The position numbers and the translations under genes are program-made. From assembly GCA_964234715.1 (NCBI GenBank), contig OZ174288.1: a stretch of DNA of 64,000 nt; one strand, 5' to 3'. The stretch's first letter is position 1; every line of letters begins with the position of its first letter. This stretch comes from Podarcis melisellensis. Taxonomy: Eukaryota. Of the stretch, positions 1 to 14,819 are shown piece after piece. The notes beneath the pieces are model-generated. The model saw only the letters and a list, made by a program, of their open reading frames with translations. It ran no database searches and was not told the origin of the DNA.

Positions 1-2571
1 CACACGTGTTGTTTCCCAGGCCCTGTCCTTACCTGTGGTGCAGAGTCTCAAGTGGGGATCAGGAGGGGTGGCAGGGCAAAGGTAGGGCTTACTAAGTCGA
101 CTGGAGCACCTGTCAAGCAGCCAGTCTCTCATTGCAAGGAGCAGTGCTTGGCAAGCTAGCAGCTTCTTGGCCTCAAGCCTGCCTGCCCCTGCCCCACAGT
201 CAGTAGACAGGCAAGAGGACTCATCTCTCCTTGCAAATGTGCTCCAAAGGTGAGAGAAACAGCACCCATCCCATCCCATGCTTTATTCCCTAAACTCCTA
301 GTATAAACAGAAGGCAGGCGCTCTCTCAGTGAAGGGCCAATCCTGCAGGAAGTGTGGAGGGGCGTCCCTTACAAAAAATCATGCTGAGAGCCCTGAGGGG
401 TTAGGCCACTGGCAGGGAAAGCAGTAAGGGAGTTCTCAGGATGTGCCTCATGGGGTTTTATGCACCTCCAAAATAAAGGAATGGAAACTGGGGGCAGAGC
501 AACCGCCTTTGCACATTGAAAGGTCCCAGATTCAATCCCTGGGAACAGCTTAAGGGAAAAAAACAAAAAGGTCAGCTAACAGGCAGTGGAAAAGGTAGAA
601 CTGCAAAGTCATTTGAATCATTAACTGGAAGTATGACAGGACATAGGCAAGCATGCACAGATCCCACCCTTAAAAGAAATACAGCCAATTAAGAGAAAAA
701 ACGAAGCCCTAATTACAAACCATTCTGAAAGGACTTGTGCCAGCTTTATGAATGATTAATGCAATCTAATTCTGATTGCGGTCAATGAGAAATGAGAATC
801 TAAGAAGAACTCCTGGAAATGGAGTATGGAGTGGTTATGGTCCAAAATCTTTCAGGGGAGATACCACCAGGGATCGAGCCTGGGACCTTCTGTGTGTGAA
901 GCCTGAGCAGTGGTCCTCCATTGCCTTCCTTCTCAGTCAGCTTATTCAGAGCAGAGGAGGTCCCTCTGCAACCCACATCTGTGATAGACAACAGGTAGAT
1001 AATTCACACTTAAATGCAGTCTTCAGTTTGGCAGCTCCCTCCACAACTTTTAAATAACCAGGAATGAGTCTAAAGGGATTCTATATCCAGTTACTTCTTC
1101 AGTTTGACCCAATGTTTCATGTTCCAAAATTTAACAATAATTGATTTTTTTGTTAATGGACACAATCAATGTTTTGATTCTATAGGGCAGCATCCAGCAA
1201 AGTAGTGTGAGAATCTCTGGTTGTATCGCAGAGCTCCCTCCTCACTTTCTTCTCCCCATGCACCCCCTAAATCTGTTCCAGAATCCCTACCCCACTCTGA
1301 ACGGCATTAGGGGACAACACAGGCAGAGGGAGGGGAAGTTCCATTGCACAAACAGAACAATGGAACCACACGTAATCTCTCCTGCAGAGTCAAACCGCTG
1401 CATTGGCAGCTCTGAAGTGACCTTCCATGGAGCGCAAGCCTGGACAGTGCGTATGGAGGTCCTTATCTCCCAGGTGACACCCTCTTGGCCTTGCTGATGT
1501 GGTCCAAAGGAAAGCAAAACAATACATTTGGCACCAGCTTGGTTGCCAGAAGCAGGTGTATGAGGTGCTATTCTTTCTTTGTAGGGTTTACTCCTTTTCT
1601 TGTCCTGAAGATATCCCACAAGGCAGTGGAGGTTTAGGATCAGTGTCTTCCTTCTCCTTGGTAGGCTACCTTCCCAGGTTGACGAGCCACATCTGACCCT
1701 CACTCCCTCTACTACAGCATGTGCAGAAACCGCCTCCTGACTGTTGGACCCACTACTGGTCTCGTCTGCTCAATCCACTGGAGCCTGTCTTCGCATGCAG
1801 AGAAAGTCCCTAACTCATGGAGGGTTTGAGACCCATCGGTTACCCTCATCAAAAGGTGTAGATCTAGGCAGTGACAAAACCCTGAGTGTTACAAATGCAA
1901 CCAAGAACACCAGTGACACTATTAGGAAGCCAACTGCAAACTTTTGTTGCCTACAGCTTGGGGGTTTCCCACAGGGTTAGGGTTCGGTACCTGGTTGGCC
2001 ACTGTGAAAACAGGATGCTGGCTAGATCCAGTAGGCTCTTCTTACATTCTTATAGTAGATGCATATTATCTAGCCCAGTAAAACCCATACTCAAGAGGTA
2101 CTCCTGGATTCTTGGCTGTTTGTTCTGTAGAAGCCTGCCCCCCGCCCCCACCAATATGGGATGCTGCCCAGAAAGCGCTTGTCTGTCTCTCCTGATGTTG
2201 AACACAGCAGGTGCCTGGATTCTGAGGCCTGCCTTGGTGTAAAAAGCCCCCTGGGCCTTTCTCCTGAGCTGAAGACCCCGCTGGGGAGGCTCCTGACCAC
2301 ATCGTTTCCCCCCACTACTAGGCCAAACTCTGGCCCCTCCCATTAGCCAGGTCGCTTCCCTAATGGATCTTCCCTGCCCCCAGCTTGGCAAGGTCCCTGC
2401 AGAGGCAAGCCGTTAAGTGCAGCCTGGCCTAATGGCGCAGGGAGGTGCTTGATGGTACCCGGTAATGGATGCGGGAGCCAGGCAGCTCTGTGTGGTTTCT
2501 CTGCTTTCCCTCCCTAGGAGGAGACAGTCAGAGCTGCCTCAGCCTTCAACACTGCTGCCGCTGCCGGGAAG

Positions 2572-4260
2572 ATGCTGCTCTTGCCCTGCCTGCTGCTGCT
2601 GGCCTTTCTCAGGACAGGTACCTGCATCTGGTCTCCCTTCTCTCCCTTCCCCACCAGCCCAGTAGCCCCCCAGGAGCTCCAACTTGCCATGCCAAAACCT
2701 CACTTTGAAATTGCAGTCTCTATAGCCTCCCAGGGGCTTCTCAGCCCATGTGCAGATCTGCTTCGAGCAAGACTCTAATTCTTAGGGGCTTCAGGGCCAT
2801 CTTAGAGCTAAGTAAAAGCCCTGTTTGTAGGGTGCCACTTGCTCTGGGGTGTCCCATCAGCTGGAGGAAGGAATCAAGCCAGGATCCAAGCATGTTGACA
2901 AGGAATGATGGGCCTGTGTTTGTGTGCATGACAATTGGGAGTGCGTGTGTGAATGTGTTTGAGACAGAGAGTTAAGCTTGTGTTCATAGGCCAGTTTGCC
3001 TGCAAGTGCTCTGCTCAGTTTCCCAGTCAGTAGGAGGAAAACCTTTCCCAGCTCCTTGCATCTTGCAACCCAAGGACAACTTCACCAGACAGACCAAAAG
3101 TCTGCCTTGCCAATGCAGATCTGTCTGATCAGAACTGGGTACCCTCAAATCCCTTAGCACAGAACCAGTCACCTTCAGTCTTTACTGGGTTTGGCTTTAC
3201 TCTTTATGGGAAACAAATGTCCCTGGACCCTGGGTGCTGGTTGTTTGATCTGGCTCAGGGCAGGAAGTGGTTCTCCTCTAGCAGAAGTGGCTGCGACTTT
3301 GCAGCCTTAATTATTAGGATACTTTCCCTCGCTGTTCAGCCCGCTTCCACAGCACTGCCAACTACTCTATTGCCATGCGACGGAAGAGACGCTGAAACGG
3401 CAGTCCCTGGGCTCGCCTGCCCCCTCCCCGGGGTCCTCCTGTGTGGGCTTTCAGCAGGGCTGAAGCGGCAGTATCCTCCCCCCTCCCCGCAATTCTCCCG
3501 CGAGCCCCGGCAGGGAGGGCAGCCCCCCGAGCACCCCGCTTGTTCCAATCGCTTCCTCTTTCCAGCTGGTACCCAAAACGTGCACCTTTGCGAGGGCTAC
3601 CTGGACCCCGCCGGGTTCCACCACGCCGGCTTCTACTGCCCACGCCTCACCGACCCCCCGACCCACGCCTACTGCTGCCTGCCTGCCGCCTCTCGCCGCT
3701 TCAAGTCCTGCTGCCCACGGCCCGAATTTGAGAGACTCCGCGGCAATGCCTCGGCTTCTGCTCCGCCAGCCGCGCCCCGGTGAGATGCCCTTGTGGGGGG
3801 ACGGACGGAAGGGGCGGCGAGGGGGGTTGGGGGTTCCCCTCTGCCCCTCTTCCTCCCTCCCTTCCGTCTGAGCCCGCTTTCCCTCCACAGGAGCCCGCTG
3901 GGGCCGCTGCTGGGCGTGGGGCTCTACGGCTGCCTCGTCCTGGCCCTCATGACCGTCGACTTCCTTCACTTCTACCGCCTCCACCAGCGCAGCTTCCACC
4001 GCCTCCTCCACCGACGAATCCTCGGGAGGTGCCCCTGCAAGAAACAGGAAACCGGCAAGAAGGCACGCGGGGCGGGCGGGGCGGGAGGTGGAGCAGCTCC
4101 GCTCGCGGGCCGCCCGGTCTCTTCTCCGCTGGGCGCTCCAAGGGAGGCGCTGCCAGCACGTGGGTCGGCTAGGGAGCGGCTGTCGCGCTCGCGTGGCGTC
4201 ACTAGAGCGCGCCATGGAGGAGACGTCGGTGAGTGGGGTGGGCGGTGGGAGCCCAGCTGA
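2572..4260 (+). CDS. Shisa-like single-pass membrane protein (SHISAL1/KIAA1644-like paralog), 3 coding exons, 209 aa
   Basis: Exons 2572-2617 (MLLLPCLLLLAFLRT, AG|gtacct, phase 1), 3566-3779 (ttcctctttccag|, CG|gtgaga, phase 2) and 3891-4260 (ccctccacag|). Phases match at both junctions, total 630 nt. The ectodomain HLCEGYLDPAGFHHAGFYCPRLTD..YCC..FKSCC..EF and TM segment LLGVGLYGCLVLALMTVDFLHFY resemble recalled SHISAL1 motifs (CEPYTD..HFGFHCPRLSD..CC..FKYCC..EF; LLGVWIYG). An acceptor at 2516-2517 implies an upstream non-coding exon. Confidence 0.8.
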
Positions 4261-4480
4261 CCCCCAAACCGAATCGCTCATCCACCCCGCCCCTCTTATC
4301 TCCGCAGGTCCCGGAGCTCCGCCGGGAGGGCAACGAGCTCTTCCAGACAGGCCGCTATGAAGAGGCGCTGGCCGCCTACACCCGGGCCCTCAGCCTCTGC
4401 CCTGGGGATGGCGAGGAGCCCGACCCGCACCGCGCTGTCCTCCACCGCAACCGCGCCGCCTGCCACCTCAAGCTGGTGAG
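3400..4480. promoter_or_regulatory. CpG island spanning Shisa-like exons 2-3 and the UNC45A promoter/first exons
   Basis: Dense CG dinucleotides. GC boxes (ggggcgggcggggcggg, ~4069-4085) lie ~130 bp upstream of the UNC45A ATG. Confidence 0.7.
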
Positions 4481-7400
4481 TGGGGAAGTGAGGAAAGCGG
4501 GAGGGTTGCCCGAGTTATGGGAGCCCCCAAGGGGCATTGCCAGCCTGCCTACCTGCCGCTCACTTCTGCAGGAGGAGAAAAGCTGGACACTCTTGGGGAA
4601 AATTTAAGGGATTATTCCCACGTGTCTTTTCTTCTTAAAATTCTCAAGTGACGTAGCACGCATCAGAAGGTAGCAGGCATTGTGTGTGTGTGAGTTTCCC
4701 CCTAAATGGCCACAGAGCTTCCCTGTGCCCCCAGTGTCAACGTTTCTGTGCATCTCTCATTTTAACTATGCTGAGCCCCTTTAGGTGGACTTCTTTTCAC
4801 CCTGCTGCTCCTTAGAAGGTGAGGTGCCTTTATGCACAGTCAAGGGGAGCCCTCGGGGCATGGCTGTCTGGCTATGAGGTACTGAGAAGACAGTGGCGGA
4901 GAGGCCAGCCTGATGCCTTGCCTCCTCCTCCTCCTCCTCCTCCTCCTCCTCCTCCTCCTGTAACCTGTAGAGAATTTAGGATTTGACAGATGTCCCCCAG
5001 AAAGGTGGTCAGGGCTGTCATTTTCAGCCTGAGCTCCTCTTGAGTATTTTCTTTTACGCTCACTCTCCACTCCCTTATATCTCCTTTCACCAATGCCTCT
5101 CTGGCATTCTGCTTCTTTTGCAGGAGGACTATGTCCAGGCAGAACTGGATGCTTCTAAAGGTGAGCTGCAAGGGGTGGGGTGGGGGATTACGCTCCTTCC
5201 AGAAGTCTCTTTCTCTGCAGAAGCCTCTTTGCTGCCTCTTAATACTTTCTTGCCTGTTCACAGCCATAGAAGCTGATGGGCACGACGTGAAGAGCCTCTT
5301 CCGGCGCAGCCAAGCCCGGCAGAAACTGGGCCGCCTCGACCAGGCCCTCCTGGACCTGCAGAGGTGTGTGAGCCTGGAGCCCAAGAACAAGGCCTTCCAG
5401 GAGGCTCTGCGCAACCTTGGCAGCAGCATGCATGAGAAGGTAGGAGAAGCATCGGGGGGGGGGGGCGGAGTAGGGCATTTCCAGGGTAGGCACCTCCCTT
5501 GTGGGGCAGCCTAGCTCTCCACCCAGGAAGGATTCTCGGCTTCAGGTGTGTACTGGGCTTCTGAAGTATGACTGTGGGGTTTCTCACCAACTGCCTGTTT
5601 GCCTCAGATGACAGCCATGTCCCGCACAGACTCCAAAGTGGAGCAGATGTTTAAGTTGCTATTGGACCCTGAAGAAAAAGATCTGGACAAGAAACAAAAG
5701 GTACTCATCTAACCAGTAAGCGAGTGGGAGGTGTGATGTGCTCTGATGAAGAGCAACTTTGCGTGTGCTGCAACTGTACATATATGGGATGCAATTGTAG
5801 AATTAGGCAGTCTCCGGTTCTGTTTTCTATTTCAAAATGCAAGTTTTGTATTTCCAAAGTTGCCTGTAGGCAAAAGCCAGAGCGAGGGTTTCTGATGCCT
5901 GGATCAGGATACCTGAGGGAGGAAGGGAGGAGGACTTTGAGTCATTATACCGTAACTTCCTTTTCTGTGACTGACAAAACCAGAATATATTAGGGTGGTG
6001 CTTATTTTAATATGATCAGTCTCAGTCAAGAGTGATTCATTCTGTCTCATGGGATTTGTATACCGCCCTTCATCCAACAATCACAGGGCGGTTCATAACA
6101 TAAAGTCATGCTAATGTTGATGGGAGTTACAGTGCAGCAGCACCTGGGGGGACTCTGCAGGCTTCCCAGCTCTGCCCAATGAGGAGATCCCCACCACCAT
6201 GGCTCTTAGAGAAGCAAGGACAATGGAGTTATTATGGGCCAGAATCTCCAAACCTCTCCAGCTCTAAATTCTGGCTGTGCCCCTCCAACAACTGTGTGGC
6301 CTGATGGGGAGCGGTTAAAGCGAGCCCCTTTGTCCAGCTAACTGGCTCTTCTCCTGTCCAGGCAGCTCAGAATTTGATTGTTTTGGCTCGTGAGGAGCCT
6401 GGTGCTGAGAAGATTTTCCAGAACGACGGGGTGCGCCTCCTGCTCCAGCTGCTGGATACAGGTCGGGTGGACACGGTGCTAGCAGCTGTGCGAACCCTCA
6501 CTGGCCTTTGCAGTGGGCATCGTTCTCGGGTATGTCCACTTTTTAAGATGAAAGCTTCTTCACTCTTTTTTTTGGGGGGGGGGTTAACAGGTTCAGTCCG
6601 TTTGCTGACAGGTTATGTATAAAACACTCTCCAAAACCTGTTGCTTCAAGGGCACGCCACTACTCCGAGGGTGTGTGTGCCTGGAACTTGTCCCTGACCT
6701 TGTACTGCATCTTTGAAATGCCTCAGGAGGTCAGGGGCAAACCAAGTGATCTCTTCTGTCTCCCTACAGTACAGAGCCAGGGAGGGGCTGCAGACGCACT
6801 TGGGCTTTCTCTGCCTCTGCACCTGCTTATAGGTTGCCACCCCATTCTCCTGGCAGGCACAGAGTTGAGTTTTCGCCCATGTTTCAGGCTGGGGAAGGGG
6901 ATGGAATCACCCCTCTCTCTCTGCTCCTCCAGTGTTGAGAGGAAACCTTGGGCTTCCTATTTGCTGGAGTCTGGCTAACCACCAGTGATTCACAAAGAGT
7001 GCTCTCCAACAGTTCCTTCTCCAGTGACACGTGGGGTACTGCAGGGTTCTGTCCTGGGCCTGGTGTTGTTCAACCTCTTGGAATGGACACCCTCCAGGTG
7101 GTGGACTCTCCTTCATTGGAGGCTTTAAAGCAGAGTTTGGATGGGCACCTGTCAGGAATACTTTAGTTGTGATTCCTGCATTTCAGAGGGTTGAACTGGG
7201 TGCCTTCCAACCCTACAATTCTATGATCACCTACTGTGGCGGACAGAGAGCTAGCAAGACTGTTGAATCCTCAAGTAATGCATGCTGCAAGATAACCTAG
7301 ATATATAAACCAGTGAACTCTGTCTCCTTGGGTAAGTTTATGGGTCCCCAGAGTTCCTACTGACAAACCACAGTTACACTTGTGGAGTTGTCTACTAGGC

Positions 7401-10400
7401 AGGTATCCAGCTCTGCTCTGAGCGTTGTGGGGAAGGTAACTGGTTCTTGAGAGACAGGCCTAGATTCCTCCCCAAGTCTCAGTGGATGCTGCCCTTCTTT
7501 CAGACGGCAGTGATCCTGGCTGAGCTGGGGCCGCAGCGCCTCTTTGCTATCCTAGAGATGGAGGACGAGCAAGTCTCGCTGGCAACCTACAGCCTGCTGC
7601 AGGTTATGTTTGATGCCCTCAAGGAGGGGCTGCAGAGGGATGTGCGTGGCAAGGAGGAAGCTGTTGTCTTGGGTGAGTCTCTTGGGTGCCTCCCTGATGG
7701 GCTGAGCATCCACTTGGTGTCGTGCCAAGCTCATCTTCGTGCTGATACCTTGGGTGGAGCTGGGCTGTGAATGCTGGCCTGGAGCAGAGGAGGCTCAGAC
7801 CTCCTCCACTCTGATTCTGCTCCTGTAGATACATCCAAAGAGCTGAAATTGCTCCTCAAGCAGCTGCTGGAAGCCCTGACACGGGAGAGCATTTCCTCCT
7901 ATGGCCGGGACAGCATCCTCAACCTGCTGATCAGTGTGGTGCCCCGGAAGTCGCTGAAGGACCCCAACAACTGCCTGACCCTCTGGGTCATTGACCAGGG
8001 TACGTCTAGCCCATTCCCGAGCCCCTCCTCTTCCTGGCCTGGGTCACTTGCCAGCGCCAGTGAGCATGTCTGTCCTCGCTAGGTTTCAAGCAGATCCTGG
8101 AGGTGGGGGGCACAGTGAGCCACAGTCCTGGGGGCCTGCGGGTGACAGAGAACACCCTCATGAGCGCAGCCGTCCTCCTCAGCAAGCTCTATGGGGACCT
8201 GAAGTGCGATGGGGAGCGGGAGAATTTCCACCGGCTCTGCGAGGACTATGTCAGGTAGGTCTGTGACTGACTCGGGGGCCGCCCCCTGCTGCTTCTGAAA
8301 GGGGGTGCTGGGAAGGCATGGGGGGGCCAATGAAGTAGTGCAGAAGTGGTGGGGAGTGATGCTCAGCGCCTAGCTGCTGACAGACATTGAAAGCGTCACA
8401 ACAGCCCACCAGCTTGGCCAGAGACACCCAGTTACTGTAGTTCATGTACTGGTTGCTTCAAGACTGGATTACTGCAGTGCGCTCTATATGGGGCTTCCCT
8501 TGCACCTGATCTGGAAGCTGAAGCTAGCACAGAATGCTGCAGCTTGATTGCTGAAAGGAGCAAAAACTTGTCAGCATATAGCACCCATGCTCAGAGATCT
8601 GTACTGGTTGCTGATTTGCTACCGAGACAAGTTCAAAAGGTTACTATTAGTATGCAAAGCCCTTAATAATTTACCTGTGAGATTGCCTTAACCCAGATAT
8701 GCTCACTCGACCACTTCCATCTGCAGAATTGGCACTGTTCCAAGTGCCATATATTACCCGTTCTGCATTTATAAGAAATGGATCTTCTAGTGTGGCGATA
8801 TCAGGCAGGCGCCTTCATTCTACTCTTTGCGGCGTCTGCTGAAAACATTTTTGTGTAGTAAGCCTACCCATATATTTAAAACGCTGGTGTGTTTTTAGTT
8901 TATTGCTGGTTTTAATTTTTAGAATGTGTTGTTTGTACTAATAATCTTACTGTTTTATTCTTTTTATAAACTACTTTGAGGTTTTCTACAATCACGTGAT
9001 ATATAGATGTTATGAAATAAATACATAATAGTGGGTGGGAGGAGGACTTTTGCTGCCAGAAGGTGCCGTTGGTTGATCTCAGATTTGAGACTCCAGCCTT
9101 CTTTCTGGTGCAGAGCTTGGGGTTTCAGCTTTGGAATGTCTGTGGCAGCTTCCTGGCTTCTCCTGATGAGCTGCCTTTCTTTCACCTCCCAGGGGCTGGT
9201 TCCAGGACCACGGCGTCCCTGGGAAATTGCGGGCCATCCAGACGGCCTCCTGTCTCCTGCAAGGCCCCTCCGAGGCTGGGAACAGGGTGCTGGAGCTGAG
9301 TGGCATCATGGAGAGCATTCTGGCCTTGTGCGCCTCGTCGCAGGAGGCCGACCAGCTTGTGGCCGTGGAGGCCCTGATCCATGCTGCCGACAAGGCCAAG
9401 CGGGCCACCTTCATCACTGCCAATGGGGTGACACTACTGAAGGAGATCTACAAGCACAGCGAGCGCGACAGCATTCGCATCCGGGCCCTGGTGGTGAGCA
9501 AGAGGCAGCAGATCTTGGAGAAGGAGGGAGCCATTTTCTGGCTGCAGTGGGACCCCACACTGTTCCTCTTCCATCTTCCCAGATTGAAGGAAGTTCTGGG
9601 GTCAGGTGGCAACTGCGGCACATCACGGTTTCTCTTTCCAGGGCCTCTGCAAATTGGGCTCGGCGGGGGGCACAGATTTCAGCATGAAGCAGTTTGCGGA
9701 AGGCTCTACCCTGAAGCTGGCCAAGCAGTGCCGGAAGTGAGTGAGCGCTGCTTTCTTCCCCCATGTCCCAGGCGCTTTAGCCTCTTCTGTGCCACGTGAC
9801 TGCCTTCCCCTTTAGAAGGAGGTCAGGCTGCCTGTCCCTTTCTCAAAATTTTGGGGGCTGGTGGGAGCTGACAGATGACAAGAATGAGTCCCTCTGGCAG
9901 CTGCACAACAGACCATGCCCCACTGAAGCCTGGGGTGGTGGGGCTTCCTATGCTCCTTGCCCACTAGGGTCTCAGCTAGTAGAGGCACTAGGGATGGATC
10001 CTGATTCTCCTTCTCCTGCTTCCAGGTGGCTGTGCAATGAGGCCATTGATGCCGGCACCCGCTACTGGGCAGCTGAGGGACTGGCCTTCCTCTCCTTGGA
10101 TGCGGACGTTAAGGAGGAGCTCCTGGAGGACAAGGCTGCTCTGCAGGCTCTTTTCTGGCTGGCCAGGGTGAGGTCCTCTTCCAAAAGGGAGGGCAAAGTG
10201 GGTGGGTGGGAGGAATGGGCAGCTGGGCATGTCCAGAGGCTCTTATTGCCTCTGCCTTGTTTATGTTCAATTTCCCTTGCTTAGGAATAGCAACCCAGCT
10301 GTAGTATATGGTACCCAGTAATTTGTAGAATTGTAGAATTGGAAGAGGTCCCAAGGCTCATCTAGTCCAATCCCTGCAATGCAGGAATTACAGCTAAAAA

Positions 10401-13400
10401 TCCCTGACAGATGACCATGCAGCCTCTGCTAAAAAAACTTTCAGTGAAGCGAGAGTCCACCACCTTCCGAAAGAGTCTGTTCCATTGTCAAACAACTCTT
10501 ACCCTCAGAAGGTTCTTCCTAATGTTTAGTGGGAATCTTCTTTCTTGTCATTTGAATCCATTGGTTTGGGTTCCTACCACTGGAGCAGCAGAAACCCACC
10601 TTGCTTTGTCTTCTATGTGATAGCCCTTCATATATTTGAAGATTTAAGATGTAAAATGCTGTTCTGTAGCAAAATTTCCTGAGTCTCAGTGAAGTGTCTC
10701 CACTGTGCCACTTCAGATCCATAACTGGAGCTTCACATGATGAAATTCTTCCCCCACTTCAACAGCACCCAAGAAGAAAAGGATTCCTCCACATAGGAAA
10801 TGAGTGTTTCGAAGAACCCTTTGCCACAACACGCCTCTTCTCTGTGTGCGAATATCTTGTTTGTGCAGAAGCATTTTGGTTATATCCCCCGCAGTGGGCT
10901 CTGTACAGCCCAGAAACATGCTGGTTGCCTCTAGGAGGACCATCCCAGGGGGGTAGAGTTGGCCCACCCAGCCCCTTTAGGGCTTTCAAATCCAGACCAG
11001 GCTCTGGAGCAGGGGTTGGCAACTTCTGGCCTGTGAGCCAAACTTGGTCCAACATTTTGGGGAAGCCATGCCCAACCACCTGATGTTAGGTGGGGGGGGG
11101 TAAGGGGGGGCTTCAAAGGAAAACCTGAGAGATTAAAGGGGATTGCTCCTTTGCTCAGGCAAGGCTTGTTCCCAGCCTCTCATCAGCTGATCAGCCTTGC
11201 TCAAGTTGGCGGGAAAGTGGATTCCATTAAAGAAAAACTGCTCCTCCTAGCACTGCTCTTTCAACCTCCAGTTTCCAGAGGTTTCAAGAGCAGGGCAGGG
11301 CAGCTCCCAAAAAGCCTTTCACACAGCACCATGCTGTACTTTGAAGTCTAGGCAACTGAGGCTTTAAAGTGCAACATCACCATTATATCTGGTGATTGAC
11401 AGGTGGGTGGCCCCACCTACTTGCCCAACTCAGTTCGTCAGGGGTGCAGAGATATTAAGAGTTCACTTCTGATCAGCTTCTGGTGTTCTGTGGCAGGGCT
11501 GTCTTGTTCTGCATCAGCTGACGCTTCTGAATAGTACTCAAGGGCAGGCACACTTTACTTTGCCTGGTAGTAGCCTAGTCTTGAGGTAACAAATGCACAA
11601 GTGGTGGTCCCTGGTCCCAAAGAATCATGAAGATCCCGACTGACCACTTCTACCTCTTTGTCTTTGTTCCTGCCACCCATCTGCTCCCCAGTCAGAGAAC
11701 CGGAGCGTCCTCTTTGCGGTGGCCTCCACACTGGTGAATTGCACCAGCAGCTACGACCAAGAGGAGCCTGACCCCCAGATGGTGGAGCTCGCAAAGTACG
11801 CCAAGCAACACATCCCTGAGAAGCACCCAAAGGTGATAGAGGGGAGAGGAGTGCCCTGAGGGGGCCAGTGGAAGCCTTCTAGCAGGCTGGGGTGTGTGTG
11901 TGTGTGTGGCCAGGCCTGGCTCCCCTGCCCTCTGCAGGAATGGTTTTTGGGTAATGGGGAGTTGAGGTTGGAGTGGGAAGCTTTTAGAAGTTTGTGATGC
12001 AAAGACCACAATGATTGTGTGAGATGCTGGTGGATGGAGCAAGGAGGGCGAGAGGAGGTGGATAATAGACATCCCATGGCCTGTTCTCATCCTCTCTCTC
12101 CATCTCTTCCTGCCCAGGACAAGCCAGAGTTCGTGCGCCAACGTGTGAGGAAGTTGCTGGCCGCCGGTGTGGTGTCAGCGCTCACCTGCATGGTGAAGAG
12201 TGAAAGCCCCTCCCTGAGCCCCGCCTGCCGGGAGCTCATCTCCAGGTGAGGCCAGCAGGCCACAGGCCTTGACCCCAGCAGAGCTTTCATAGAAGGGAGG
12301 GGACCCAAAGTTTCATCATGCCCAACCCCTGCAATGCAGGTATTGCTGTTCACAGGTAAGTCCTCCAGACCTGCTACACAGAGGAGACATGCTGGCCTTT
12401 TTACCTGTGGGTTTCTGCTTAGCCAAAGAGCTCAGAAAATTAAGTCGAGCCAAGATGACGCCTTCCTGTAATCTCAAGTTGCTGTGGGGTGTGTGTGTGT
12501 AGACTTCTGGGTCCCACATTCAGTGCCTGCTATTGTGTGCTTCAGGGTGTTCCTGGCTGTCGTGGAAGACCCTGAGGACCGAGGGGCTGTGGTGGCTGCT
12601 GGAGGCGGGAAGGTGAGCCTCACACATGCATACACACCCTCTCCTGTTTGGCTTAGCCCTGCAACAGCACTGGGGCATCAAGGCTTTTTCACAGTCAAGC
12701 AGAATATGGATTTTATTCCACCACTAGGCACTCATCCCTCTGGCCCTGGAAGGCACTGAAATAGGGCAGACGAAGGCTGCGCAGGCCCTGGCTAAGATCA
12801 CCATCACCACCGCCCCCGAGATGGCTTTTCCGGGCGAACGGGTCAGTGTGGAGTGAGGGCAGCATCACAGCAAGGCAGTGGATGGGGTCGGGTTCCCCTT
12901 TCCTCTCCCCACCGCCCTGAGCCTTTTCTCTCTCCTCCTGCAGATCTACGAGGTGGTCCGGCCCCTGGTGGGCCTCCTGCACTTGAACCGCAGTGCCCTG
13001 CAGAATTTCGAAGGGCTGATGGCTCTCACCAACCTGGCGGGGACCAGTGAGCGGCTCCGGTAAGGCTGGAGAGGCAGGCAGGCTGGGTCCCAGCCCTGTC
13101 CTCTGGGAGGGTTACGTTCCTTGGAAGCAAGGGCCATTACCTTCTCCTGCTGGCTCCTCCTCCTGCAGGCAGAAGATTGTGAAGGAGAAGGCCGTGCCCA
13201 TGATCGAGGGCTACATGTTTGAGGAGCACGAAATGATCCGCTTGGCAGCCACTGAGTGTATGTGCAACATGGCGCTGAGCCCAGAGGTGAGCAGGGGTAC
13301 TGGGCCACCTGGCTGTGCTGGGGCCCCAGGAGGTTTATCTCCACTCACATGTCTCTTTTGGGCAGGTCGGGGAGCTGTTCCTGGTGGAGGGCAGTGACCG

Positions 13401-13938
13401 GCTCAAGCTGCTAGTCCTGTACAGCGGGGAGGACGACGAGAGGCTCCAGCGGGCAGCTTCAGGGACGCTGGCCGTCTTGACCTCGTTGCTGCCCCAGATC
13501 TGTTCCCGCATCCCTCAAGTGGTGAGTACCGCCTGGAGGTTGGGCTGAGCCCAGCAGCTGCCCACTGGGCATGGCAGGCCTTTGGAGGGTCTCCAGGAAC
13601 TGGGTGGATGCCAGGTTTCCTTCCTGCTTGCTAACTGACCTCTCACCCTCTTTCCCCAGACGACTCACTGGCTGGAGATCCTGCAGGCCCTGCTCCTCAG
13701 CCCTGGCACCGAGCTCCAGCACCGCGGGGTGGTGGTAGTGAGGAACATGGTGGCTGCTGACAAGGAGGTGGCCGAGAAGCTGATGGAGAGCGAGACCATG
13801 GAGATCCTGTCTGTTATGGCCAAGGCCAAGGACAAGCCCCAGATTGCCCAAGTGGCCCAGGAGTGCCTGGCGCAGGCTGTGGCTTATGGCTTGATCAAGC
13901 CCAACCCTCCTGCAGCTGCTGAGAAGGAGGAGGACTGA
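4214..13938 (+). CDS. UNC45A: Protein unc-45 homolog A (TPR + UCS myosin/Hsp90 co-chaperone), 20 coding exons, ~941 aa
   Basis: Kozak GCCATGG at 4214. Exons 4214-4228, 4308-4475, 5124-5160, 5264-5439, 5608-5700, 6362-6529, 7504-7672, 7829-7999, 8083-8254, 9193-9493, 9642-9736, 10026-10167, 11692-11832, 12118-12245, 12546-12612, 12728-12841, 12944-13059, 13169-13286, 13366-13521, 13660-13938. All GT-AG, sum 2826 nt. Motifs [61 protein letters not shown]. Confidence 0.97.
4921..4959. repeat. (CCT)n microsatellite, ~13 units, in UNC45A intron 2
   Basis: Read directly from the sequence. Confidence 0.95.
7090..7228 (+). mobile_element. CR1 LINE 3' fragment
   Basis: gtggtggactctccttcattggaggc...ccttccaaccctacaattctatgat, a typical CR1 3' end with ATTCTRTG tail. 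Confidence 0.7.
8440..9030 (+). mobile_element. L2-type LINE 3' fragment
   Basis: Degenerate RT C-terminus (agactggattactgc..gctctatatggggcttccc..cagaatgctgcagc), an AT-rich 3' UTR and an aaataaata tail. Confidence 0.65.
10326..10643 (-). mobile_element. CR1 LINE 3' fragment
   Basis: tagaattgtagaattggaag..tctagtccaatccctgcaatgcaggaat..ttcttcctaatgtttag, the reverse complement of the element at 7090. Confidence 0.75.
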
Positions 13939-14819
13939 GAGCTGCCCCTTCCCGACCTGCTTGGGCACACTGCGCTGTCGCTGCTGCTGGGCACGGGCAC
14001 AAGGGCACAAGAGGGAGGGGGCTTGGGGCTGCTGGGACCAGGGGAGTGAGCCACAGCGATTGCCGCTGGCACCCTTCAGAGCCACAAGGGCTGGTGCCAC
14101 CATTTTGTGGCACAGAAGGCAGCTCCAGGGGCTGTTCTGCAGCCTCTTGGTGCTCTTAGCTGTCTCTCACCTGGAGGAGGGTGTCGCTGGGCTGCTGCTG
14201 CCACACACCTTGGCAGCGCTGATGGTGACAGGTGGTGGGCTCCCCAACTACCCCTAGGCTTGGGGGTCACGGAGCTGCTTGTGCTGCATGGCTGCCTTTT
14301 TAAAAATTTCCTGCTGCTGGAAATCACAGCCTTCCTGTCCCTCTGGAGCTGCTCCTTCATGGTCTGAGGCTGCAGCTCCTGAGGCCTCCTCCCCTCCCTT
14401 GGGGTAGGAAGAAACTGCCTTACTGACAATCCATTCCTCTTGCCCTGTGTGGCAAACAGGACCACCGTTTATTGTAAGCAAAGATGATGTGGGAAAGAAT
14501 GTAAACTGTATGAAAAGATTATGGGAAACTATACAGATGACTTTTTCGGTAAATCTGATTTCGTGTGTTTCTCAATATTGCATTGATCGAATGGGGAGGG
14601 GACTGAACAACTAGGCTGTATGTAAATTGAGGGGACGGGACCCATCCCCATTTAGGGATATGTCTGAGCTCCAGAGTGACTCAGGCAGAGGGAGATGATG
14701 ATCAGACCCCTTCCCACTTGGACCAACCTCCCTTCCACAAGGAAGAACAACCAAGCCCGTGTCCTATGGTGTTGCTGGGTCCAGGAGCGAAGGCTGAAGC
14801 CCCCTCCCTCCTCTTTTAC

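Follow-up and report, generated by a model that had tools for sequence, protein, structure and literature searches.

The 64,000-nt window analysed here, from the lizard Podarcis melisellensis (assembly GCA_964234715.1, contig OZ174288.1), carries a Shisa-like gene and, directly downstream of it on the same strand, the chaperone gene UNC45A. The Shisa-like gene model, read from the sequence and rebuilt by script, comprises three plus-strand exons at 2572–2617, 3566–3779, and 3891–4260, with GT/AG junctions throughout; the exons were searched one by one and joined only for translation. The joined coding sequence of 630 nt specifies 209 codons and a TGA at 4258–4260, the first in-frame stop. The coding part of exon 1 (2572–2617) consists of the ATG and a signal-peptide-like MLLLPCLLLLAFLRT, followed by a donor GT at 2618, and this start region aligns with the annotated start of the python protein. 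Exon 2 (3566–3779) encodes a cysteine-rich Shisa_N domain with an N-x-S glycosylation site. Exon 3, preceded by an AG at 3889–3890, has two dissimilar parts. The first (3891–3981) specifies a transmembrane helix (~3907–3972) and a juxtamembrane HFYRL, and can be aligned to snakes, birds, and turtles. The second (3982–4260) encodes an apparently unconstrained cytoplasmic tail of 92 codons plus the TGA, and the same DNA also serves as the CpG-island promoter of UNC45A, its exon 1, and the start of its intron 1.

The identity of the upstream gene was established mainly through exon 2. Against the Pfam family PF13908 (Shisa_N), this exon scored 23.1 bits, barely above the gathering cut-off of 22, and its translation is 55–61% identical to bird and turtle proteins listed by NCBI under the name “protein shisa-like-1” or “shisa-like-1a”. 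The signal peptide and the single transmembrane helix after the domain were seen directly in the translation, and the transmembrane segment aligns with that of the orthologues. Lizard and python have in common all six cysteines, the HLCEGY, CPRL, YCC, and KSCCPRP motifs, and the N-x-S site. More distant shisa-like members occur in sturgeon, bichir, coelacanth, rays, frogs, salamanders, a caecilian, a vole, a pangolin, and whales. Turtles have several annotated shisa-like isoforms, some of which skip the transmembrane exon, and a gene model of the fin whale fuses the shisa-like gene with UNC45A.

Conservation extends to the putative promoter and 5′ sequence of this gene (2339–2571). Over the ~240 nt upstream of the ATG, the lizard and three snakes have a mean column identity of 77%, and three TAATGG motifs (2361–2366, 2430–2435, and 2463–2468) are invariant in all four. 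The CpG observed/expected ratio is 0.33 or less, so this promoter has no CpG island. Taken together, the Shisa_N domain, the syntenic shisa-like-1(a) orthologues, and the promoter shared by lizard and snakes argue that the upstream gene is a real and conserved Shisa-like gene. It looks functional in squamates, its expression in the lizard being a prediction. Databases hold few traces of it in this group. Searches of protein collections, by words and exhaustively among representatives, found no annotated protein with the Shisa-like exons from the lizard genome or from other lizards, and no non-snake squamate was among the matches of either search. The only annotated squamate model is that of the python, and the protein collection contained no spliced Shisa-like transcript contigs. 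Literature searches on UNC45A together with shisa, or on shisal1a, returned nothing relevant to the gene pair.

The downstream gene is clearly recognizable as UNC45A, with exon-by-exon matches over 4314–14026 to the PF11701 (UNC45-central) gene of the zebra finch, its N-terminal TPR preceding the UNC45-central and ARM exons. Its ATG lies at 4214 in a strong context (GCGCCATGG), and the coding part of exon 1 (4214–4228) specifies the peptide MEETS before the donor TCG|GTGAGT. This mini-exon, ATGGAGGAG...gtgag, is the annotated UNC45A coding start in the zebra finch and recurs in a contig from a second bird (L005). Intron 1 is only 79 nt long (4229–4307), running from the donor GTGAGT to the acceptor CCGCAG|GTC at 4307|4308. 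Exon 2 (4308–4475) encodes the first TPR (TPR_2, 38 bits) and matches the zebra finch UNC45A.

Core promoter motifs of UNC45A extend over 4070–4201 and comprise GC boxes (4070–4084 and 4110–4115), an E-box CACGTG (4157–4162), and a CRE half-site CGTCA (4197–4201), all on the plus strand and all within the Shisa-like ORF. The arrangement is shared by the lizard, three snakes, and two birds, in which, counted from the UNC45A ATG, the E-box lies at −57 to −84 and a full or half CRE site at −17 to −39, with GC boxes nearby. The CpG observed/expected ratio rises to 0.64–0.95 over 3601–4400. The conserved core promoter of UNC45A in squamates, as predicted from these motifs, thus lies within Shisa-like coding sequence.

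The two genes meet still more closely at their coding sequences. The last Shisa-like coding exon spans the UNC45A core promoter and start codon together with the first 32 nt of intron 1, and its stop lies 44 nt beyond the UNC45A ATG. If the colinear exon 3 is transcribed, the 15 nt of 4214–4228 are exonic in both genes, with UNC45A read in frame +1 relative to the Shisa frame. Were position 4228 instead spliced to 4308, the Shisa frame would stop at 4358–4360, 115 nt upstream of the junction at 4475. A preliminary description had claimed that the Shisa-like ORF runs through the promoter and start exon of UNC45A, that its last exon contains the GC boxes and the ATG in a different frame, that its stop lies inside intron 1 and leaves a dual-coding stretch, and that the alternative splice would move the stop to 4358–4360. 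Rebuilding the model, mapping the motifs, and repeating the translations reproduced each of these statements base for base.

Comparison with other vertebrates places this overlap at one end of a graded series. The gene order (MAN2A2 or HDDC3) > shisa-like > UNC45A > RCCD1 is a recurrent one, the two middle genes lying on the same strand, and the shisa-like gene is directly upstream of UNC45A in the zebra finch, the second bird, a tortoise, the olive python, and the prairie vole, as in the lizard. Measured from the end of the Shisa-like stop codon to the UNC45A ATG, the gap is ~3.4 kb in the tortoise, where an AATAAA follows the stop by 87 nt; 866 nt in the zebra finch, mostly tandem repeat; 357 nt in the second bird; 222 nt in the vole; 17 nt in three snakes (the python locus L012 and the Logan contigs L003 and L013); and −47 nt, an overlap, in P. 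melisellensis. Mammal-like Logan contigs L009–L011 and protein P0076 (98 contigs) were left out of the comparison as being possibly of human origin. For the python, the NCBI annotation includes both coding sequences and places the Shisa-like stop 17 nt before the UNC45A ATG. This distribution suggests that the close adjacency is old and that the tandem pair is ancient in amniotes, and complete loss of the spacer appears to be squamate-wide on the basis of one lizard and three snakes. Coding-on-coding overlap was seen only in this lizard lineage, the snakes stopping before the ATG. The preliminary description had considered that an earlier conserved stop in other lizards would make the overlap either a lineage-specific readthrough or an assembly indel, and would refute its reading; the stop positions, compared within squamates between the lizard and the three snakes, point that way.

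Whether the overlapping tail matters as protein was judged from its composition and its evolution. The tail (3982–4257, 92 codons) is 72% G+C, and a stop-free run of its length would arise by chance in 18% of sequences given the base composition and in 29% after dinucleotide shuffling. The opposite strand of the region has a 276-aa ORF of its own (3451–4281). The open frame as a sign of selection was ruled out by this chance expectation and by the antisense ORF. Across the three codon positions, moreover, GC content gives a coding signature in the transmembrane part (0.73/0.37/0.97) and is flat in the tail (0.75/0.70/0.72); the values for exon 2 are 0.66/0.63/0.79. The translation of exon 3 (122 aa) had zero matches when used as a protein query. 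At the DNA level, exon 3 of the lizard aligns well with that of snakes over the ~90 nt of the transmembrane helix and not at all beyond it, and past the helix the bird and turtle proteins (149 to 327 aa) vary in length and have no conserved columns. The three snakes offer a closer comparison. In the transmembrane part, their differences fall 4/2/16 by codon position, with 15 synonymous and 6 non-synonymous codon changes; in the tail they fall 13/9/6, with 4 synonymous and 20 non-synonymous changes. The snake tail also contains two indels, both multiples of three, which could weakly hint at constraint on the frame, although their location in GCC-like triplet-repeat runs makes them ambiguous. 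Overall, the failure of lizard and snake tails to align, the 4:20 ratio in snakes, the flat GC profile, and the openness expected by chance combine to show a tail with no sign of protein-level constraint. The two alternative C-termini that the preliminary description had envisaged are, by the same evidence, unlikely to be functional.

The position of the stop depends on ~270 nt of this 72% GC sequence being without indel errors. It is conceivable that a one-base indel in the GC-rich tail, either in the assembly or as a real frameshift, or else the decay of a silent gene, has produced the ORF artefactually or by a recent lesion, and that the true or ancestral stop preceded the UNC45A ATG. The TAG at 4170–4172 in the neighbouring frame, 42 nt before the ATG and thus at a snake-like position, would be a suitable candidate, the region is 70–73% GC with runs of G and C, and the exon is absent from annotated lizard proteins. 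Against this, exons 1 and 2 and the transmembrane part are intact, no cysteine, glycosylation site, or splice site having been lost, and the gene has kept its conserved promoter. An earlier stop, moreover, would still leave the UNC45A promoter inside a coding exon, as in snakes. We regard an artefact or recent lesion as quite improbable, the least probable of the explanations weighed here.

A second consideration is how far Shisa-like transcripts extend. On the predicted gene model, a productive Shisa-like mRNA must reach at least 4260, since the UNC45A promoter and start codon sit inside its coding exon, and on its way into intron 1 has to pass the UNC45A promoter, the presumed transcription start region of that gene, and its exon 1. 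Snake transcripts would have to cross the promoter as well, as 17 nt are too short for a 3′ UTR with a poly(A) signal in addition to a promoter. Transcript overlap is thus well supported by the comparative anatomy of the predicted genes. Poly(A) signals have less to say. A hexamer scan found no AATAAA or ATTAAA between 3701 and 9016, in agreement with the earlier claim that none follows the stop until 9016, and 13 common hexamer variants are all absent from 4040–5671. In the python, no canonical signal is present for 3.6 kb. The absence of AATAAA was nevertheless rejected as proof of run-on transcription, as neither AATAAA nor ATTAAA occurs in 16.7 kb of the zebra finch locus even though MAN2A2 and UNC45A must end there (zebra finch UNC45A probably uses ACTAAA). 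In GC-rich sauropsid DNA, the absence of a hexamer is weak evidence.

The same GC-rich bird genes, ending at this locus without canonical hexamers, lend some plausibility to another outcome, in which the real Shisa-like mRNA ends differently from the model. Exon 3 might contain a donor that splices to an unrecognised terminal exon, or hexamer-independent cleavage might take place just after 4260, which would leave a short overlap with UNC45A or give the protein another C-terminus. The turtle isoforms, with and without the transmembrane exon, are in keeping with such flexibility. The python annotation, on the other hand, shows a colinear exon 3 with a stop 17 nt before the UNC45A ATG, and inspection by eye of 3982–4213 revealed no obvious strong donor, the only one being the UNC45A donor at 4229. 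A different ending of this kind is accordingly rated as improbable, if slightly less so than the artefact or lesion discussed above.

The explanation that we favour, and consider reasonably probable, is that an ancient tandem pair has had its spacer collapse in squamates, and that the overlap came about through crowding, as a by-product, rather than by design as a two-gene unit. A tissue-type Shisa-like-1a gene would be the upstream partner and UNC45A, which encodes a housekeeping chaperone, the same-strand partner downstream. Conservation of the Shisa-like protein (over its signal peptide, Shisa_N domain, and transmembrane helix) would end at ~3981, and past that point the ribosome would read the core promoter DNA of the UNC45A CpG island until it met the first in-frame stop. 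Since the tail appears free to vary as protein, the stop may drift. In snakes a TGACG motif 17 nt upstream of the ATG supplies the TGA; the lizard, which does not have this stop, would use the TGA in UNC45A intron 1. Both the 15 nt of dual coding and the pair of possible C-termini would then be incidental consequences of an unconstrained tail.

Under this scenario of crowding, polymerase starting at the Shisa-like promoter would have to pass the UNC45A promoter and first exon, and transcription probably continues well into UNC45A before the 3′ end is formed, given that no usual poly(A) hexamer occurs before 5672. The 3′ end could arise inside UNC45A through hexamer-independent cleavage in an early intron or through splicing into UNC45A exons. 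The latter route would generate NMD-prone transcripts with the stop at 4358–4360, which satisfies the NMD distance rule (a stop >50–55 nt before a junction) only given splicing on into UNC45A. As for UNC45A protein, it would be made from transcripts of the gene’s own promoter and not from a bicistronic mRNA. The spliced upstream part that precedes 4214 contains the Shisa ATG and two more ATGs, and reinitiation after a 209-codon ORF that ends 3′ of the second gene’s ATG is unexpected under standard scanning rules. Translation of UNC45A from a Shisa-like mRNA is thus unlikely, because the 209-codon ORF both precedes and overlaps its start codon.

The preliminary description had read the same anatomy as a coupled or bicistronic unit, in which the mRNAs of the upstream gene run on through UNC45A. 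Part of that reading stands, in that a Shisa-like mRNA must cross the UNC45A promoter and the same crowding is found in three snakes. The functional part, a coupled unit, finds no support in the evolutionary signal. In its full form, such a unit would be under selection, with run-on mRNAs that are bicistronic or regulated by NMD, two meaningful C-termini, and interference that tunes UNC45A. Several features of the locus would suit it: transcript overlap is forced, the tight spacing has been kept in snakes, birds, and the vole, the 1.4 kb after the stop is free of usual poly(A) hexamers, and the alternative stop, by its 115 nt, fits the NMD distance rule. Neither the tail nor the position of the stop is conserved, however, and the tortoise, with a normal AATAAA and a 3.4-kb spacer, indicates that coupling is needed by neither gene. 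Together with the scanning rules, which do not anticipate reinitiation after so long an ORF, these observations make a selected coupled unit unlikely, though a shade less so than a transcript that ends differently.

The closest known counterpart is the olive python, Liasis olivaceus (GCA_030867105.1, locus L012), which has the same MAN2A2 > shisa-like > UNC45A order, the same strand, and the same exon plan, with the E-box, GC box, and ETS motifs of UNC45A likewise inside the last Shisa-like coding exon. The two species differ in where the Shisa-like frame closes: 17 nt 5′ of the ATG after a tail of ~30 residues in the python, and 44 nt 3′ of it, in intron 1, after a tail of ~95 residues in the lizard. 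They also differ in UNC45A itself, intron 1 having been lost in snakes and being present in the lizard. At the level of the protein family, the predicted product resembles other members of the Shisa/SHISAL1 family (PF13908) in its signal peptide, Cys-rich domain, single transmembrane helix, and variable Pro/Gly/Arg-rich tail. It corresponds to the “shisa-like-1(a)” paralogue that adjoins UNC45A, and no PPxY or PDZ-binding motif is visible in its tail.

Beyond squamates, two kinds of gene arrangement invite comparison. Read-through, conjoined, or tandem-chimeric pairs of vertebrates, and tandem overlaps on one strand, consist of same-strand neighbours without a terminator between them, and their transcripts are often NMD substrates. 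The lizard pair, known from the genes alone, is similar in that transcription can continue into the second gene, and is unusual in that the coding sequence of the first gene covers the core promoter and start codon of the second. In bicistronic vertebrate loci such as GDF1-CERS1, SNURF-SNRPN, and MFRP-C1QTNF5, both ORFs have been demonstrated on a single mRNA, and there is no overlap with a separate conserved promoter. The lizard genes share with these pairs an upstream and a downstream ORF on one strand at a very short distance, but UNC45A has retained a conserved CpG-island promoter of its own, and translation from a bicistronic mRNA is unlikely. The arrangement is therefore best described as a rather extreme new example of tandem same-strand overlap, or of a read-through-prone pair, and does not by itself constitute a new mechanism.

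The locus nevertheless offers a clean natural example of intergenic DNA vanishing between same-strand vertebrate genes, in which a protein tail becomes “free text” supplied by the neighbouring promoter and a stop codon wanders over the start of the next gene. It has a practical consequence for annotation, the Shisa-like gene being missing from lizard protein sets, and it is useful for interpreting sequence with a dual use, coding as well as regulatory. Tandem transcriptional interference at a CpG-island promoter might also be tested at this locus. It is tempting to go further and to suggest, although this is a speculative and rather doubtful extension, that in all squamates the UNC45A core promoter doubles as code for the Shisa-like tail, without a terminator, and that Shisa-like transcription transiently occludes it. 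If true, obligatory dual use of promoter and coding sequence, together with tandem transcriptional interference, would be lineage-wide in squamates, and the coding overlap of the lizard would be its extreme.

Mammals possess the Shisa-like gene, where it is named 'shisa-like-1a' in the vole and pangolin and 'shisa-like-1' in the gray whale. In the fetched prairie vole locus (L014:2896-7355), the gene is flanked by HDDC3, on the opposite strand, and by UNC45A, the ATG of which lies 222 nt downstream of the Shisa-like gene; these 222 nt lack a canonical poly(A) hexamer. A gene model of 993 aa from the fin whale, Balaenoptera physalus (P0175), has the Shisa-like protein and UNC45A fused in frame; the fusion is probably an annotation artefact arising from tight spacing, and the model shows that the two genes are likewise side by side in cetaceans.

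Upstream of the Shisa-like ATG, the region at window 2339-2571 shows 77% conservation when this lizard is compared with three snakes, and three homeodomain-type TAATGG motifs, at 2361, 2430, and 2463, are invariant among all four. Together, this conservation and the invariant motifs suggest that the region is a tissue-specific promoter that is not within a CpG island. A 276-aa ORF on the minus strand (window 3451-4281), spanning Shisa-like exons 2 and 3 and the UNC45A promoter, is taken not as a gene but as a composition artefact of DNA that is 70% GC.

The annotated intron 1 of the python Shisa-like gene is ~87 nt long, a length divisible by three, and the frame would thus survive intron retention. 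In contigs from two further snakes (L003:1193-1510 and L013:481-825, compared with python L012:6001-6345), the ORF that begins at the Shisa-like ATG stays open and in frame across the short intron 1 region and on into exon 2. UNC45A intron 1 has been lost in snakes (L012:6662-6826, L003:1779-1965, and L013:1089-1265), where the start codon and the first TPR share a single exon, and the N-terminus is MAA..., not MEE....

In the zebra finch, GC-rich tandem repeats, with units including GGGGCTAAGTACGGGGGGACACTCG... and GTCCCTGTCCCGGG..., fill both the spacer that separates the Shisa-like gene from UNC45A and intron 1 of UNC45A (L002:8760-9400 and 9600-10040), and neither AATAAA nor ATTAAA occurs across the entire 16.7 kb locus.

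Finally, three turtle Shisa-like proteins (P0002, P0014, and P0018) are annotated isoforms without the transmembrane exon; if translated, isoforms skipping this exon would yield a secreted or soluble version of the Shisa-like protein.
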